Shown: piece by piece, positions 25,231 through 60,348 of the stretch | Layout: each line of letters opens with the position of its first letter | How positions within the stretch are numbered: the first letter of the stretch is position 1 | Assembly (NCBI RefSeq): GCF_006345805.1 | Contig: NC_042997.1 | Location: forward strand, 48,608,001 to 48,672,000 | Reading direction: 5' to 3' | Source of the DNA: Octopus sinensis | Lineage: Eukaryota | Length of the DNA stretch: 64,000 nt | The notes under the pieces: generated by a model | Databases searched by the model: none | What the model was told of the DNA's origin: nothing | Seen by the model: the letters and a program-made list of their open reading frames with translations, nothing else | Program-made: the position numbers and the translations under genes

Positions 25231-25407
25231 TGTAAATGTAATATGTGACAATTATTCGGTAGCCATGATAAAACTCCGAGTTTCGGAGGCCGAGGTGGAA
25301 ATCCACGCCCGATAACTGAAGAGATAGCGGCGTAGATTTCCACCTCGGCATCCGAAACTCGGAGTTTTATCATGGCTACCGAATAATTGTCACATATTAC
25401 ATTTACA
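25231..25407. repeat. 177-bp fold-back: 79-bp arms, 2 mismatches, 19-nt loop
   Basis: tgtaaatgtaatatgtgacaattattcggtagccatgataaaactccgag... / ...ctcggagttttatcatggctaccgaataattgtcacatattacatttaca. Confidence 0.95.
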
Positions 25408-26014
25408 GATAAATTCCCCTATTTACATAATAGCAAGGTCTCTTTCTTTCTTTTGTTGTCTTACCGTTTTTATCAATATATATATATATATATATATATA
25501 TATATATATGTATATATGTGTGTGTGTGTGTGTGTGTGTTTGTTTTCATGTTCAGTTATAATAAAAATAATTTTCAGATGTTACTCTATACTCTAGTATA
25601 GCATTGATTTATTAATCTTGAACAAGAATACTATTGAGAGTTACGTAGCAGGACGACTCTTTGAAGTCACTATCAACAACATTCTTGTTTAAGAATAATA
25701 TGTGTGTGTGTGTGTGTAAGCCTTTGGTTTCCTTCCCCAGCTAGACAAACGGTGTTGCTATGTTTACTTCCACATAAATGAGCGGGTGGTTCGACACAAG
25801 AAAAAGAGAAACGATAGCTTAAGTCCTTGTTTGAAAAATAATCACTGGTATCGAGTTGTTCGACTAAATCTCTCAATGTCGTGCCCCAGCATGTCAGCTG
25901 TTCAATAACGGAAACAAGCGAAAGAATATAAGAATATAGAGAAGTATGTGAGCATCTATACCAAATTGTAAACGTATTGAACGTATTTTTTTTACTTTCT
26001 TCGAGCATACTTAC

Positions 26015-26158
26015 AACAATGCCCTCTGTGTGAGCTTCTAACATTCTAAATTTGCTTTCTATGCAAAAACGTCTGCATCTAAATAGAAGAAATTTCTCTA
26101 ATGCTTCTACCGCTAGTGTTGACAACGATATAACAAAAACGAAGTAATGAAATTGCAT
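26015..26158 (-). CDS. Candidate first coding exon of a secreted protein: MQFHYFVFVISLSTLAVEA|LEKFLLFRCRRFCIESKFRMLEAHTEGIV
   Basis: First ATG after an in-frame TGA; hydrophobic core with AVEA-type cleavage site; exactly 48 codons ending at a consensus donor GTT|gtaagt (phase 0). Confidence 0.55.
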
Positions 26159-27061
26159 ACGGTAAATGTTCGTTCATAGTGAAATCTCCATTGTTGAACT
26201 ACAGCTTGTTCTAGATAGCTAATCTCAGTTATTTACTATGACGTTAGTTGATTTTTGTTGGACTTTTTTTTCTTCGTGATTGCAGATATTGGATATACAT
26301 TTGCCATAGGCCTTAAATAATTGGAGACTTTTGTTAGATAAGGAAACCAGTTTAGATACTAAGCAAATAAAATATCTTGTAAACAGATACACGCAAAAAC
26401 ATGTGCATCCTCTCATGTCAAGACAACATATATATAAGTGTAATATGTGTCTACGTGTACGCATACATGTAAGCACACAGCCATATTTATATATGCATAT
26501 ATAAAAATGTGTGTGTCGGTGTACGTGTGTAATGTTTTAGCTATTAACATTCCGCGTTCGATATCAGTATCAGTGGATGATACCTTCCACAAGCATCTAC
26601 TATATGCAATGACATGACCAAATATTTACGAGGCAGTTCAGAAGCTTCTCAAATATGTATGTGTGTGTGAGGGTGTATATGCATGTATTGTGTATATATA
26701 TATGCGCATGTGTGCATATCTATGTGTGAGTGTATGTGTATATTTGCGTTTGGGCTTATCTGTTACATTGCTAAAAAATTACGAATCACATCATAAGCGA
26801 TATCAGTAATAATAAAAGGTAATCGATATGTTTGGGAACATGAACGGTGCTCTGTTTAAAAATATAAACTAATAGAATCAATGAACTTGTTTCCGTCATG
26901 TCTGAATTCATCAGCGAAGACGATTAACCACACTTTACTAGACTTAAGCTGCTCAAAATATCGAAAGAGACAGAAAATAATTATTGATGCTTTTTCATTC
27001 TATATATAAACAATAAATGGGATAACAAAGTTATTTGCGAAGATTTCAATTTGCATACATA

Positions 27062-27257
27062 CGAGGTGAGTCAAAAATAATGCCATTTTGTTTAGGACAG
27101 TTATAATTACCAGCACAGGAACATGTATCATACATCAAAATGTAGCTGATCCTCTATGGCCCACATCCCTATTCCTCAACATAGTCACCGTTTCTCTCAA
27201 TAGCAATGTTCCACCTTCGAATGAGAGCGTGTATCCCTGGTCCGTAAAATTCTGTAA
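27062..27257 (-). mobile_element. Mariner 3' end with TIR
   Basis: Minus strand EFYGPGIHALIRRWNIAIERNGDYVEE*; terminus TA|CGAGGTGAGTCAAAA at 27060. Confidence 0.85.
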
Positions 27258-27510
27258 GCTATTATGAGTAAAATGCTTTCCTCTTTGATTTGCATAACCT
27301 ACATTGGGAATCTACTTGGATTTTGTCTATCTTGGCTTTTATCCAATTAGTCCTAAATGCTTGATCTTGTGCAGCTACTAACAAACTTTCTGTCTCCCTC
27401 TTCAGCTTTCCTTTCTGCAACCATAACCATGTCTCAATACTATTTTTGCAGCAACTATCTTTGCAAAATTGTCATGCAACACTTTCTACTGCCAGTGAAA
27501 TAATTTCTGT
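27258..27510 (-). mobile_element. R4/Dong fragment (CCHC region)
   Basis: KLKRETESLLVAAQDQAFRTNWIKAKIDKIQVDSQCRLCKSKEESI. Confidence 0.85.
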
Positions 27511-57150: not shown

Positions 57151-57671
57151 TATATATATATATCGTTGCTATTATATTTAAACTGTCGTACGTCCAAATT
57201 TAACCAAAGGTGTTTTATTTTCCAATATCTAATTTTGCTTGCAATAGCTGGTTCTTTTGGTCAAACTGTCGTATTTCCAGCTGCTTCAGATGCCAAGATA
57301 TGAAAATTGTCAAACTGTGGTACCACAGTTTAGCATTTTTCAAAAGTGTACTAAGTTCCATATTCCACAGTTTTGCAATAATATTTCTGACTGAAAATAT
57401 CATACATGCATGGAGTCACAATTTTATGCACCCAAGTATTATTGTTAAGCTGAAATCGAATGGTGAAACTATTTGTTTGCGTTCTGAAAAAGCTACATTT
57501 TGGACTTACAACACCATTGCATAATAGCAACGATATGAATATATATATATATATACACACACAGACACACATATATATATATTATACATATATATATATA
57601 TATATATATATATTCTATCTTTGTATCTTCCATCTTCCGTCTCTCTTATTAACTATATATATATATATATA

Positions 57672-58532
57672 GAGGATAAATTTGAGCTAATCCACTTTGG
57701 AAAAGATGATGCCCTGAAACTCCCATACTCCCTTCCTTCAGGTGAACCTCTCGCGGCGTCCAACAACATCAGAGACTTGGGAGTAATTGTGGACAACAAC
57801 ATAAGCTGGGCCACTCATATAAACACCAAAGTTGACATGGCCCGCAGAATGTGTTCCTGGATTCTCAGAACTTTCCAGTCGAGAGATATCCACACCATTA
57901 TCATTCTCTTCTCCACTTTTGCCCGACCCCACCTTGAATACTGTTGTCCAACTGTGGTCTCCCCACACAATACAACCGGTATCATAAAAGTTGAAGTACC
58001 CAAAGGGCAATCACAAAAAAGATAGATGGCATGACAGGCCTCGACTATTGGGGTCGACTAGAAAAGCTAAAACTTTATTCTCTCCACGTCGTCGTGAGCG
58101 CTAAATCATCTGCATGATGTGGAAAATATTCCATCAGCAATGCCAAATGATGTTGGCATCACCTTCAAGGTACATCCAAGGCTTGGGCCCCGTGCCATCC
58201 GCCCAAAACAAAAATCGCACTCTCATCTCATAACAACAATACGGCACAATTATTTCACCTCAATTGGCCCCGCTCTCTTTAACATTACACCAAAACACAT
58301 TAAAACAGAAACTGACCATATAGGGTTCAAGAAGTCTTTGGACAGATCCTTCAAGAAATCCCGGATAAACCCCCTACACCCGGATATGTTTCTGTAAACA
58401 ATAACTCTCTACTTGAGTGGGCCATAGTGCCCAAATTCTGACTTGAAAGACTTCACCAGGTGGTGCTATTAAGTTAGACATGGCCTGGGCCAATAATGGC
58501 CGAAACCTATCAAAGTATCAAAGTATCAAAGT
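57672..58532 (+). mobile_element. 5'-truncated CR1/L2-group LINE 3' part with (TATCAAAG)3 tail
   Basis: KFELIHFG...IRDLGVIVDNNISWATHI...ILRTFQSRD...ARPHLEYCC...YWGRLEKLKLYS...IGPALFN...FKKSLD; several 1-bp frameshifts. Confidence 0.9.
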
Positions 58533-58596
58533 ATATAATATATATATATATATATATTTAAAAAAAGGAGATGTCGAACACGAGTGGTGATATATA

Positions 58597-59876
58597 AAAA
58601 AGGAAATGAAGAAAATGCTGACAAATAATTGAAGTAATTTAAGTATTTAATTAGGTGAAAGTTCTTTTTACCGGTTGCGCATTTGTTATGCTTATCAAAA
58701 TATAAAAGAGAGATTAGAGTCTGTCTTTATATGTGAAAAAAAGAGGCTCCAGAGTTGTTTTCGATTATTTGCTTGTTTCGCGCTAAAATTTGATTGTCAT
58801 TATGAAGGGGTCACGTGAATGTTTGAATGGAAGTTGGGTTGGGGGTAAGAAAAAAGGCTCCAGAGAAGTTAAAATTGGCTAGTGTCCCGCCTAAATTTTT
58901 ATTGGCCATAATAAAGAGGTCACGTGAATGTTTAGAATTTTCGAAAATAGTGTTGTTGAAAATCCTATTGTTCAGGCTGGTGAGTAGACGTCATGTGGAT
59001 ATTTTAAATAGCTTTTTAGCGCGTAGTTAGGGAGTGTATTTCCGCTTGACTGGATAAGTAAGTGTTAGAACACATGGGGGAGAGCTGTATGTATGTATGT
59101 GTGCGCGCGCGCGCAACGTGTGTGTGTGTTATATATGTATGTGGGGCGCGCGCGCGTGTAATATGTGTAGGTGTTGGGGTACAATTTTCAATATTTATAG
59201 TTCTGCTGGCCATGGCCTTGTGCCGATAACAGGCACTTTCCCAAACGACCACAGGCCCCAGACCCAACCTATAAATATTGAAAATTGGTACCCACCCACA
59301 CACATACACATATATACACCGCGCGCGCCCCAACATACATATAAACACACACCGCGCGCGCGCGCGCACACATAACATACATACAGCTCTCCCTGTTCTA
59401 AACGAACTTACTATCCAGTTCAAGCGGAAATACACTCCCTAACTACGCGCTAAAAAGCTATTAAAATATCCACATGACGTCTACTGACCAGCCTGAACAA
59501 TAAGAATTTTCAACAACACTATTTTCGAAAATTCTAAACATTCACGTGACCTCTTTATTATGGCCATAAGAAATTTTAGGCGGGACACTAGCCAAATTTT
59601 AACTTCTCTGGAGCCTTTTTTCTTACCCCAACACCAACTTCCATTCAAACATTCACGTGACCCCTTCATAATGACCAATCAAAATTTTAGGCGCGAAACC
59701 AAGCAAATCGAAAACAACTCTGGAGCCTCTTTTTTTCACATATAAGAGACAGACTCTAATCTCTCTTTTATATTTTGATAAGCATAACAAATGCGCAACC
59801 GGTAAAAAGAACTTTCACCTAATTAAATTACTTAAATTACTTCAATTATTTGTCAGCATTTTCTTCATTTCCTTTT
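58597..59876. repeat. 1.28-kb fold-back: about 605-bp arms (58597-59200 / 59269-59876), 68-bp spacer
   Basis: aaaaggaaatgaagaaaatgctgaca...tttcaatatttatag is mirrored by ctataaatattgaaa...tgtcagcattttcttcatttcctttt along the full arm; differences are mostly 1-2-bp indels. Confidence 0.95.
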
Positions 59877-60110
59877 ATATATATATATATATAATATAAT
59901 ATAATATATATATATATATATATATGTATGTATGTATATATATACGGCTTTTGTGTATTTCTTAAATGGTTTACAAACACCTTCAACGCTGCAATTGTTT
60001 ATATATATATATATATATATATATATATAATAATAATATTAGAGAATAAATCCAAACTTACAGGGAAAAATCAGATTTAGGATTGAATCCAATATTATAG
60101 TAAAATATTA

Positions 60111-60348
60111 TATTATATTAATTAGAGACAAAACCACTATTAGGCAAATCAAACAATGAAAAACTTAAGCCAATACATAATATTATTAATTTATATTATT
60201 TAAATATATAACAAAATTATTTTTAAAATATTTTAATAATTTTGTTATATATTTAAATAATATAAATTAAATAATCTTATGTATTGGCTTAAGTTTTTCA
60301 TTGTTTGATTTGCCTAATAGTGGTTTTGTCTCTAATTTAATATAATAT
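60111..60348. repeat. About 238-bp AT-rich fold-back, about 110-bp arms
   Basis: attagagacaaaaccactattaggcaaatcaaacaatgaaaaacttaagccaatacataa / ttatgtattggcttaagtttttcattgtttgatttgcctaatagtggttttgtctctaat. Confidence 0.92.

Follow-up and report, generated by a model that had tools for sequence, protein, structure and literature searches.

How do five long inverted repeats with unrelated sequences come to share one asymmetric architecture beside microsatellites? The question is raised by a 64,000-nucleotide (nt) stretch of the Octopus sinensis genome (NCBI RefSeq assembly GCF_006345805.1, contig NC_042997.1, positions 48,608,001 to 48,672,000 of the forward strand). We call this whole stretch the window, and coordinates below refer to it unless another locus is named. 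An earlier note had described five fold-backs here and proposed a common mechanism for them. We conclude, with a probability of about 0.65, that the five (E1 to E5) are fold-back or template-switch inverted duplications, made by any polymerase and with a retroposition variant included. Several lines of evidence lead us to this conclusion. The architecture is found in five of five large fold-backs; the overhang belongs, in E5 and less completely in E2, to a unit that recurs in the window with one arm; and the junctions carry 2 to 10 nt of microhomology, with no target-site duplication (TSD) at E1 or E3.

Anatomy of the five fold-backs and their microsatellites

An inverted-repeat finder was swamped by the microsatellites. 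We replaced it with two censuses: a dust-filtered minus-strand self-BLAST of the 64 kb and a more sensitive self-BLAST of the microsatellite-masked sequence. They returned exactly five large fold-backs, all within 1 to 8 nt of where the earlier note had placed them. Since neither census yielded a further large fold-back, E1 to E5 are the full set and were not cherry-picked. The remaining matches were a head-to-head pair of short interspersed elements (SINEs), an element with 31-bp terminal inverted repeats (TIRs) and trivial AT-rich mini-palindromes. The SINE pair had been a candidate sixth palindrome (42707-43167; 461 bp, 73% identity) and was rejected as two SINE copies lying head to head, with no microsatellite. 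Pairwise comparison found the arms of the five mutually unrelated, as the note had held. A likeness seen by eye between the termini of E3 and E4 was also rejected (z = 1.2).

E1 (25231-25407) has 79-bp arms around a 19-nt loop (25310-25328). Its left anchor (25115-25233) is (TA)47 followed by (TG)12, and the (TG)n covers the first 3 nt (TGT) of the left arm. That abutting arm (25231-25309; plus strand, as are the features of all five below) is the putative new inverted copy, identical to the other arm at 77 of 79 positions with no indels. The overhang-side arm (25329-25407) would be the template. Beyond it, a 68-bp overhang (25408-25475) leads into (AT)21(TG)13, which ends at 25543.

The order is reversed in the other four. 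At E2, the far side (31642-31850) consists of (TA)n (31642-31807) and a 43-bp overhang (31808-31850). The fold-back (31851-31994) follows, with a template arm (31851-31914), a 16-nt loop (31915-31930) and an abutting arm (31931-31994); the arms are 64 bp long and the final 4 nt (TATA) overlap (TA)8 at 31991-32006. The far side of E3 (53633-53931) holds a (TA)n cluster (53633-53784) and a 147-bp overhang (53785-53931). Its fold-back (53932-54276) has a 75-bp template arm (53932-54006), a 195-nt loop and an abutting arm (54202-54276) that overlaps (TA)9 at 54275-54293. For a minus-strand SINE (54294-54657), this (TA)9 also serves as 3' tail or target.

E4 is the largest. Its far side (58538-58589) is (TA)10, placed after the (CAAAGTAT)3 tail of a long interspersed element (LINE) relic, plus a 32-bp overhang. 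The fold-back (58590-59884) has arms of about 614 bp (58590-59203 and 59271-59884) around a loop of about 67 nt (roughly 59204-59270), and the right arm runs into composite (TA)n at 59876-59944. Within both arms are two direct subrepeats of about 110 bp, plus (CG)n/(TG)n tracts beside the loop. The subrepeats (58730-58960, mirrored at 59514-59736) are 82% identical over aligned positions, or 74 to 76% by BLAST, and each terminates in GGTCACGTGAATGTTT, with a CACGTG core. E5 has (TA)15 (60000-60029) and a 75-bp overhang (60030-60104) on its far side (60000-60104). Its 125-bp arms meet without a spacer (fold-back 60105-60354; template arm 60105-60229, abutting arm 60230-60354), its GC content is 16% and its last 10 nt overlap (TA)8 at 60345-60361.

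In all five, the inverted copy is contiguous with its template, with loops of 0 to 195 nt. Predicted single-strand folding energies are -139, -132 and -123 kcal/mol for E1, E2 and E3 (z = -24, -18 and -17).

Distances from the left and right ends to the nearest microsatellite were 0 and 68 nt for E1, 43 and 0 for E2, 147 and 0 for E3, 32 and 0 for E4, and 75 and 0 for E5. All five thus have one end fused to a dinucleotide microsatellite and, on the opposite side, a unique overhang of 32 to 147 bp and then (TA)n. This is the asymmetry that the earlier note had reported, and E1 is indeed the mirror image of E2 to E5. The note had also described the fold-backs as anchored on (TA)n. That is accurate for E2 to E5, which (TA)n abuts; E1 abuts (TG)12, itself preceded by (TA)47. 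Short TA-like runs also open the left arms of E4 (ATATAT), E5 (ATATTATATTATATT) and E2 (TATA). At the arm end on the non-abutting side we found AT in E3, TATA in E2, (TA)3 in E4, a degenerate 15-nt TA/ATT run in E5 and nothing in E1.

Could inverted repeats and microsatellites simply have met by chance in DNA so rich in (TA)n? Arrays of at least five TA units are dense: 68 after merging, 56 of them in the 39 kb between 25 and 64 kb. We placed intervals of the same lengths at random, also counting ends that fell inside arrays. One abutting end, with (TA)n 20 to 160 bp beyond the other, had a probability of 0.017 to 0.032 per element, and the second feature given the first had one of 0.13 to 0.20. 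Five of five by chance comes to about 1e-8, and the conditional part alone to about 1e-4. Yet all five large fold-backs show the two-part architecture, and their junction overlaps fit the motif of the specific microsatellite that each abuts. The architecture is far beyond chance, and a chance meeting has next to no probability as its explanation.

Single-arm paralogues, junctions and the age of the arms

Each fold-back with its overhang was compared with the window by BLAST, and z scores were taken from dinucleotide shuffles. The overhang and left arm of E5 (60036-60209) are collinear with 54706-54885 (72% identity, z = 15.7). This paralogue of the E5 overhang and template arm (54706-54888, plus strand) has (TA)24 on its left, a TA run on its right and no second arm. 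The homology starts no more than 6 nt from the (TA)n border at both loci and stops about 20 nt before the centre of the E5 palindrome. Directly after it lies a short paralogue of the E2 overhang (54907-54990, plus strand) with TA runs on both sides. The core of the E2 overhang (31817-31841, AAATCTCWGAGCGAGWTATAAACAG) recurs there at about 54912-54937 (24 of 26 identical, z = 11.4); the core motif has two exact matches in the window and none in shuffles. The E2 paralogue also holds an 18-nt piece matching the E2 arm (16 of 18, z = 4.1).

Because both paralogues keep the overhang, the overhang of E2 and E5 is not random flank and belongs to a repeated unit. From these alignments, the unit conserved at E2 and E5 appears to be the overhang plus one arm, running from (TA)n to (TA)n and not from arm to arm. 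The flanks past the (TA)n arrays are unrelated, so the units behave as (TA)n-bounded modules. What the earlier note had called an unpaired overhang is present in all five, and for E2 and E5 the description needs amending: it is part of a repeated unit. The note had also raised the prospect of overhang plus arm occurring elsewhere without the inversion. This we found within the window for E5, and less completely for E2.

A further stretch, 46796-46968, free of (TA)n, has a weak collinear similarity of about 60% to the E5 overhang and arm (z = 5.2), which is not significant when the single-arm copy is the reference (z = -0.4). Either an old third copy of the E5 unit or base composition may account for it. 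We rejected a likeness between the sequence after E5 and the short E2 paralogue unit as not significant. Are the overhangs degenerate copies of their own arm termini? Not in general: E4 was marginal (z = 3.1) and the others had z below 1.4. At E4 the overhang (58558-58589), straight after (TA)10, begins AAAAAAGGAGATGTCGAA, and the arm (58596-58613), straight after (TA)3, begins AAAAAAGGAAATGAAGAA, matching the overhang start at 15 of 18 positions (z = 3.1). This echo could be what is left of a first switch that was aborted, or else a solo terminus.

How old are the inversions? With loops and gaps excluded, the arms differ by 2 substitutions in 79 positions in E1, 2 to 3 in 64 in E2, 4 in 75 in E3, 5 in 591 in E4 and 1 in 122 in E5. 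SINE pairs in the window differ by 5 to 7%. The arm divergences span 0.4% to 5.5%, which argues for repeated events over time. The E5 arms are younger than their unit: they differ from each other at 1 of 122 nt, and from the single-arm copy by about 27%. Both are equally distant from that copy (about 72 to 74% identity), as expected if the inversion is much younger than the unit duplication. By this comparison the E5 inversion would postdate the duplication of the unit, unless the arms have been continuously homogenised.

The junctions are equally informative. The abutting arm overlaps its microsatellite by 3 nt (TGT) in E1, 4 (TATA) in E2, 2 (AT) in E3, 6 to 9 (ATATAT) in E4 and about 10 in E5, and the overlap has the motif of (TG)n in E1 and of (TA)n in E2 to E5. 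The template arm opens at an internal patch resembling the abutting microsatellite. The TA-rich patch at the boundary of E5 arm and overhang is also found in the single-arm copy, at about 54775-54795, and hence predates the E5 inversion.

A systematic search found no TSD for E1 or E3, each of which has a non-repetitive flank. The same search recovered TSDs at two palindromic insertions used as positive controls, in locus L002 of Octopus bimaculoides (CM046601.1): 9 bp (GATTTGAAG) at 173-266 and 8 bp (AAGTCTAG) at 5081-5181, the latter inside a SINE. [quoted passage not shown] The single-arm paralogues, the overlaps of 2 to 10 nt and the absence of a TSD at E1 and E3 support it.

What mechanism would leave such traces? 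A 3' end would arise at or in the microsatellite beside a module, where cruciform-prone (TA)n or (TG)n breaks or stalls a replication fork. It would fold onto its own strand and be extended with the adjacent module as template, giving the new arm. Synthesis would halt at an internal TA-like patch (TG-like for E1), and the nascent end would re-anneal to the microsatellite by microhomology. The product would read far (TA)n, overhang, template arm, loop, new arm and near microsatellite, the overhang being the remainder of the module left uncopied, as far as the following array. Of this scheme the anatomy, the non-random anchoring, the overlaps at the junctions, the single-arm paralogues and the young age of the E5 arms relative to their unit are observed, whereas we infer the intermediates, break site and enzymes. 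It is well established that double-strand break repair can yield inverted insertions templated by fold-back, with microhomology at their junctions (PMC11724301, PMC7467729, PMC5728401). We tentatively suggest, at somewhat less than even odds, that in each of the five a short module already lying between two microsatellite arrays was later duplicated in part, and inverted, in this way by DNA repair or replication.

Perhaps the palindromes are artefacts of fold-back chimeric reads or of mis-polishing? Arm differences in E4 and E5 are dominated by indels. In the E4 arms we count 5 substitutions against about 30 indel events, of which 25 are of 1 nt, mostly beside the same base, and insertions are skewed to the right arm (20 versus 11); the E5 arms show 1 substitution and 3 to 4 indels. 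The ratio of indels to substitutions is 6 to 8.5 for E4 and 3 for E5, against 0 to 0.25 for six ordinary repeat pairs in the same assembly, and E4 and E5 lie just 220 bp apart. The arms of E1 to E3, by contrast, have 2 to 4 substitutions and zero indels, which marks them as aged, real duplicates. All five sit in unique non-palindromic flanks on both sides and have defined loops that are not adapter-like. Neither the microsatellite and microhomology architecture nor the single-arm paralogues would be expected from read chimeras. Since no polymerase error rate accounts for 5% indels, the simplest account of E4 and E5, and the more likely one, is poor consensus within real near-perfect palindromes. 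Hence the earlier note's caveat about artefacts applies to E4 and E5 and not to E1 to E3, and an artefactual origin of the fold-backs is very improbable.

Several observations weigh against fold-back duplication. No paralogues of E1, E3 or E4 were found in the 64-kb window or in 41 kb of other octopus DNA, which comprises L002 and a second locus, L001, from Octopus vulgaris chromosome OX597823.1. TA-type repeats flank E2, E4 and E5 on either side (TATA, ATATATA and TATAT), as a TA-targeting transposon would give; these matches are indistinguishable from microsatellite. None of six hairpins in L001 and L002 is anchored on an array of at least five TA units, so (TA)n anchoring is not common to all octopus hairpins, and two of the six, the TSD-flanked pair in L002, are true insertions. 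The single-arm copies are paralogues and not orthologous or allelic sites, and they may reflect loss of an arm from a palindromic ancestor, combined with gene conversion at E5. Finally, arms of 64 to 614 bp compare with 5 to 34 bp in experimental fold-back insertions (PMC11724301).

Retroposons, TIR elements and the surrounding repeats

Could the polymerase have been a reverse transcriptase (RT)? Each module would then be a retroposed copy whose 3' tail is the (TA)n beside the overhang, integrated into (TA)n or (TG)n by target-primed reverse transcription. The 5' end of the complementary DNA would fold, copy itself and join the upstream target microsatellite by microhomology, placing the palindrome at the 5' end of the element. 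(TA)n lies beyond the overhang in all five, and for E2 to E5 a TSD inside (TA)n would be invisible. E1 can be read as a unit of fold-back, overhang and (AT)21 'tail' set within a split (TG)n array, with (TG)12 before it and (TG)13 after it. The paralogues share the overhang-side end at (TA)n, and the E2-like copy is shorter at its other end, which fits a shared 3' end and 5' truncation.

The SINEs of the window offer a precedent. Copies of an abundant SINE-like repeat at 38506-38971, 54275-54705 and 56753-57163 are (TA)n-bounded at both ends in three of three cases. Their architecture, (TA)n, 3' half, (CA/TA)n, 5' half, (TA)n, matches border to border in all three copies aligned. It follows that mobile modules here usually have (TA)n arrays as their tails or landing sites, and that (TA)n-tailed retroposons in (TA)n are normal. 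ARAGORN did not recognise the tRNA-like head of this SINE, so that 'tRNA-derived' is a reading by eye only. A second SINE-like repeat has three to four copies, at 42707-43382 and 44402-44589.

A second precedent comes from the same genus. At 12995-13063 of L001, the first 33 bp or so of a 5'-truncated LINE recur in inverted orientation ahead of it. The element is young, its RT frame staying open from 13031 over at least 200 codons, and lies downstream of a SINE. Its homology to related RTs breaks off precisely at the centre of the hairpin: the relatives have a conserved QHGF...SCxTNLLE block where L001 carries the inverted copy. In this example, however, the arms measure 33 bp and there is no microsatellite.

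Other observations also count against retroposition. The five putative 3' ends have no motif in common, either with one another or with the SINE and LINE 3' ends of the window; SINE or LINE features could not be recognised in the modules; the LINEs of the window end in tails of (TAAC)n and (CAAAGTAT)n rather than (TA)n; and the modules do not recur in L001 or L002, which speaks against high copy number. The L001 LINE, the E1 tail within split (TG)n and the SINEs landing in (TA)n make retroposition a credible variant of fold-back duplication, if a doubtful one. The link to Penelope-like elements drawn in the earlier note found no backing: the RT relics of the window are of LINE type (RVT_1, with jockey-like names), and nothing Penelope-specific was seen.

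The main alternative to a fold-back class is that the five are non-autonomous DNA transposons with very long TIRs, MITEs that insert at TA or (TA)n, the overhang being a neighbouring stacked module. As inverted repeats they qualify trivially, their arms being 95 to 99% identical in substitutions. Plant elements of the SaTar type are (TA)n-flanked, have TIRs of up to 250 bp and occur in arrays of unrelated modules (PMC5907723, PMC4486113); the window too is modular, with 63 inter-array modules counted. The annotation of O. vulgaris includes families of Tc1-mariner, Mutator and MITE type (PMC13282606). TSD-flanked palindromic insertions do occur in octopus, namely those of L002; their arms are mutually unrelated, and neither resembles E1 to E5 in sequence. 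Both carry two to three units of telomere-like repeat (TTAGGG/CCCTAA) in their loops, and L002 has a partial look-alike of them at about 18000-18030.

The window itself contains a genuine TA-flanked TIR element within microsatellite, at 36351-36588 (plus strand). It is 238 bp long, with 31-bp TIRs (CAGGGTGGCTCAAAAGTAGG...; CAGGGTGGCTCAAAAGTAGGTTTACA), TA on both flanks and an internal 31-bp tandem duplication (36504-36564). Its neighbours are (AT)n on one side and TATATACA(TG)n on the other, and it lacks an overhang. By eye it is mariner-MITE-like; no further copies were found in the window, L001 or L002. A symmetric TA-targeting MITE has this form here, and E1 to E5 stand in contrast to it.

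The TA-type repeats at both ends of E2, E4 and E5 suit such an element, and on anatomy alone these three could fit. E4, whose arms hold tandem subrepeats as Foldback/Galileo TIRs do, could individually be one. For the five as a set, the evidence points elsewhere. E1 and E3 lack a TSD despite a non-repetitive flank. The paralogues of E5 and E2 hold the overhang and one arm, with the other arm gone and the homology stopping at (TA)n borders, and the E5 arms are far closer to each other than to the paralogue. We found no extra copies, no common termini and no partner transposase TIR in the window, and no copies sharing both termini in the window or the 41 kb of other octopus DNA; the relatives of E5 and E2 are one-armed. 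Nor does a TA-specific target explain why E1 adjoins (TG)n with a TGT overlap. We therefore consider long-TIR transposons unlikely as the source of E1 to E5. Helitron ends (TC...CTRR with a short 3' hairpin) were sought by eye on the E2 unit, the only one checked, and were absent in both orientations.

The remainder of the window is AT-rich, noncoding animal DNA full of repeats, with about 35% GC and no open reading frame (ORF) longer than 168 amino acids (aa). (TA)n arrays are spread unevenly, with 12 merged arrays in 1-25000 against 56 in 25000-64000, and every fold-back sits in the (TA)n-dense part. The sole Pfam match is an RVT_1 fragment (23809-24165); the RT fragment beside it has 93% identity to an O. 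vulgaris protein, and a LINE relic at 24241-24886 has 96.6% identity to a paralogous LINE copy on OX597823.1 (L001). ORFs at 51253-51639 and 61374-61808 show mariner-transposase-like motifs by eye (...PNSPDLAPSDFHLIP... and ...LLLNDNARTYT...), and Pfam gave no match to them at E of at most 0.01, which leaves 'mariner relic' an unconfirmed by-eye label. A 40-bp unit (...TTAATRAAAGAGACGGAAGAT...) occurs at 57614-57653, with a (TA)n array on each side, and in the opposite orientation at about 60370-60410, between (TA)n and a (GATA)n tract (85% over 41 bp).

Database searches added little. A 139-aa ORF of E4 had no match in a protein search, and no ORF in E4 matches any Pfam family. Rfam and ARAGORN were negative, as was Pfam on the E4 ORFs and the putative mariner fragments. 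Ten window ORFs were not in the protein collection, a weak negative since the queries had a stop codon and several had non-ATG starts; a LINE ORF taken from the first ATG was not on record. Of two scans of metagenomes, one with the E2 overhang motif and one with the E1 arm, neither yielded a match.

Consequences and comparison with known systems

If fold-back duplication is correct, (TA)n arrays would be both SINE landing pads and birthplaces of long inverted repeats from any neighbouring sequence, and TIR-based finders would mis-annotate such hairpins as MITEs. It is possible, and on balance doubtful, that octopus genomes harbour an ongoing microsatellite-anchored process that turns arbitrary modules into long near-perfect hairpins, of which five lie in 35 kb here. 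Judging by the consensus quality of E4 and E5, hairpins of this kind are difficult to sequence, and they are potential fragile sites. If transcribed, they would be ready-made double-stranded RNA. The process would then be a de novo source of double-stranded RNA and of microRNA-like hairpins, independent of transposon families. Coleoid cephalopods are unusually rich in ADAR substrates and in novel small-RNA genes, and hairpins so formed could feed both. The signature is countable: one arm fused to a microsatellite by microhomology, the other leading through unique sequence to the next array. This would allow the fold-back process to be measured genome-wide and across octopus species.

How do the five compare with known palindromic elements? 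MADE1-like Tc1/mariner MITEs are palindromic, nearly whole-length hairpins with a TA target-site duplication. E1 and E3 differ in having no TA on the non-repeat side, and the five differ in lacking family copies or common termini and in an overhang conserved with one arm. L1 twin priming and Penelope-like elements yield 5' inverted structures, Penelope-like elements having inverted or partial-tandem 5' repeats. The likeness is a palindrome at the putative 5' end and a repeat tail at the other; L1 twin priming, however, inverts and does not duplicate, and none of the five modules could be assigned to LINEs, SINEs or Penelope-like elements. Human palindromic AT-rich repeats are known for causing translocations. 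E5 resembles them as a 250-bp, 84% AT, spacer-less near-perfect palindrome. Drosophila Foldback/Galileo-type elements have long TIRs with subrepeats. E4, a 1.3-kb palindrome with two direct subrepeats of about 110 bp per arm, is like them in this, and unlike them in that it shows no TSD that can be told from TA repeats, no second copy turned up and it has no coding partner.

Among elements that target microsatellites are the plant non-autonomous Mutator-like elements Micron, TAFT, MuTAnT and SaTar (PMC5907723, PMC4486113, PMC8449440), of which the SaTar type has (TA)n flanks and TIRs of up to 250 bp in elements of 380 to 1100 bp (PMC5907723, PMC4486113). They share with our loci the (TA)n flanks, the small unrelated units in microsatellite-separated arrays and, sometimes, very long TIRs. 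The plant elements, however, are symmetric from TIR to TIR and multi-copy, with 8- to 11-bp TSDs outside microsatellites, whereas E1 to E5 are asymmetric, have one-armed paralogues, show no TSD at E1 and E3 and reside in an animal host.

The closest likeness is to experimental fold-back insertions (PMC11724301, PMC7467729, PMC5728401), in which an inverted copy likewise lies beside its template, across a short spacer and with a distal microhomology junction, and the sequence copied is arbitrary. E1 to E5, known from sequence, differ from these insertions in being germline-fixed, recurrent, locally dense and always anchored on a dinucleotide microsatellite. They fit best among fold-back or template-switch inverted duplications, as a variant anchored on microsatellites.

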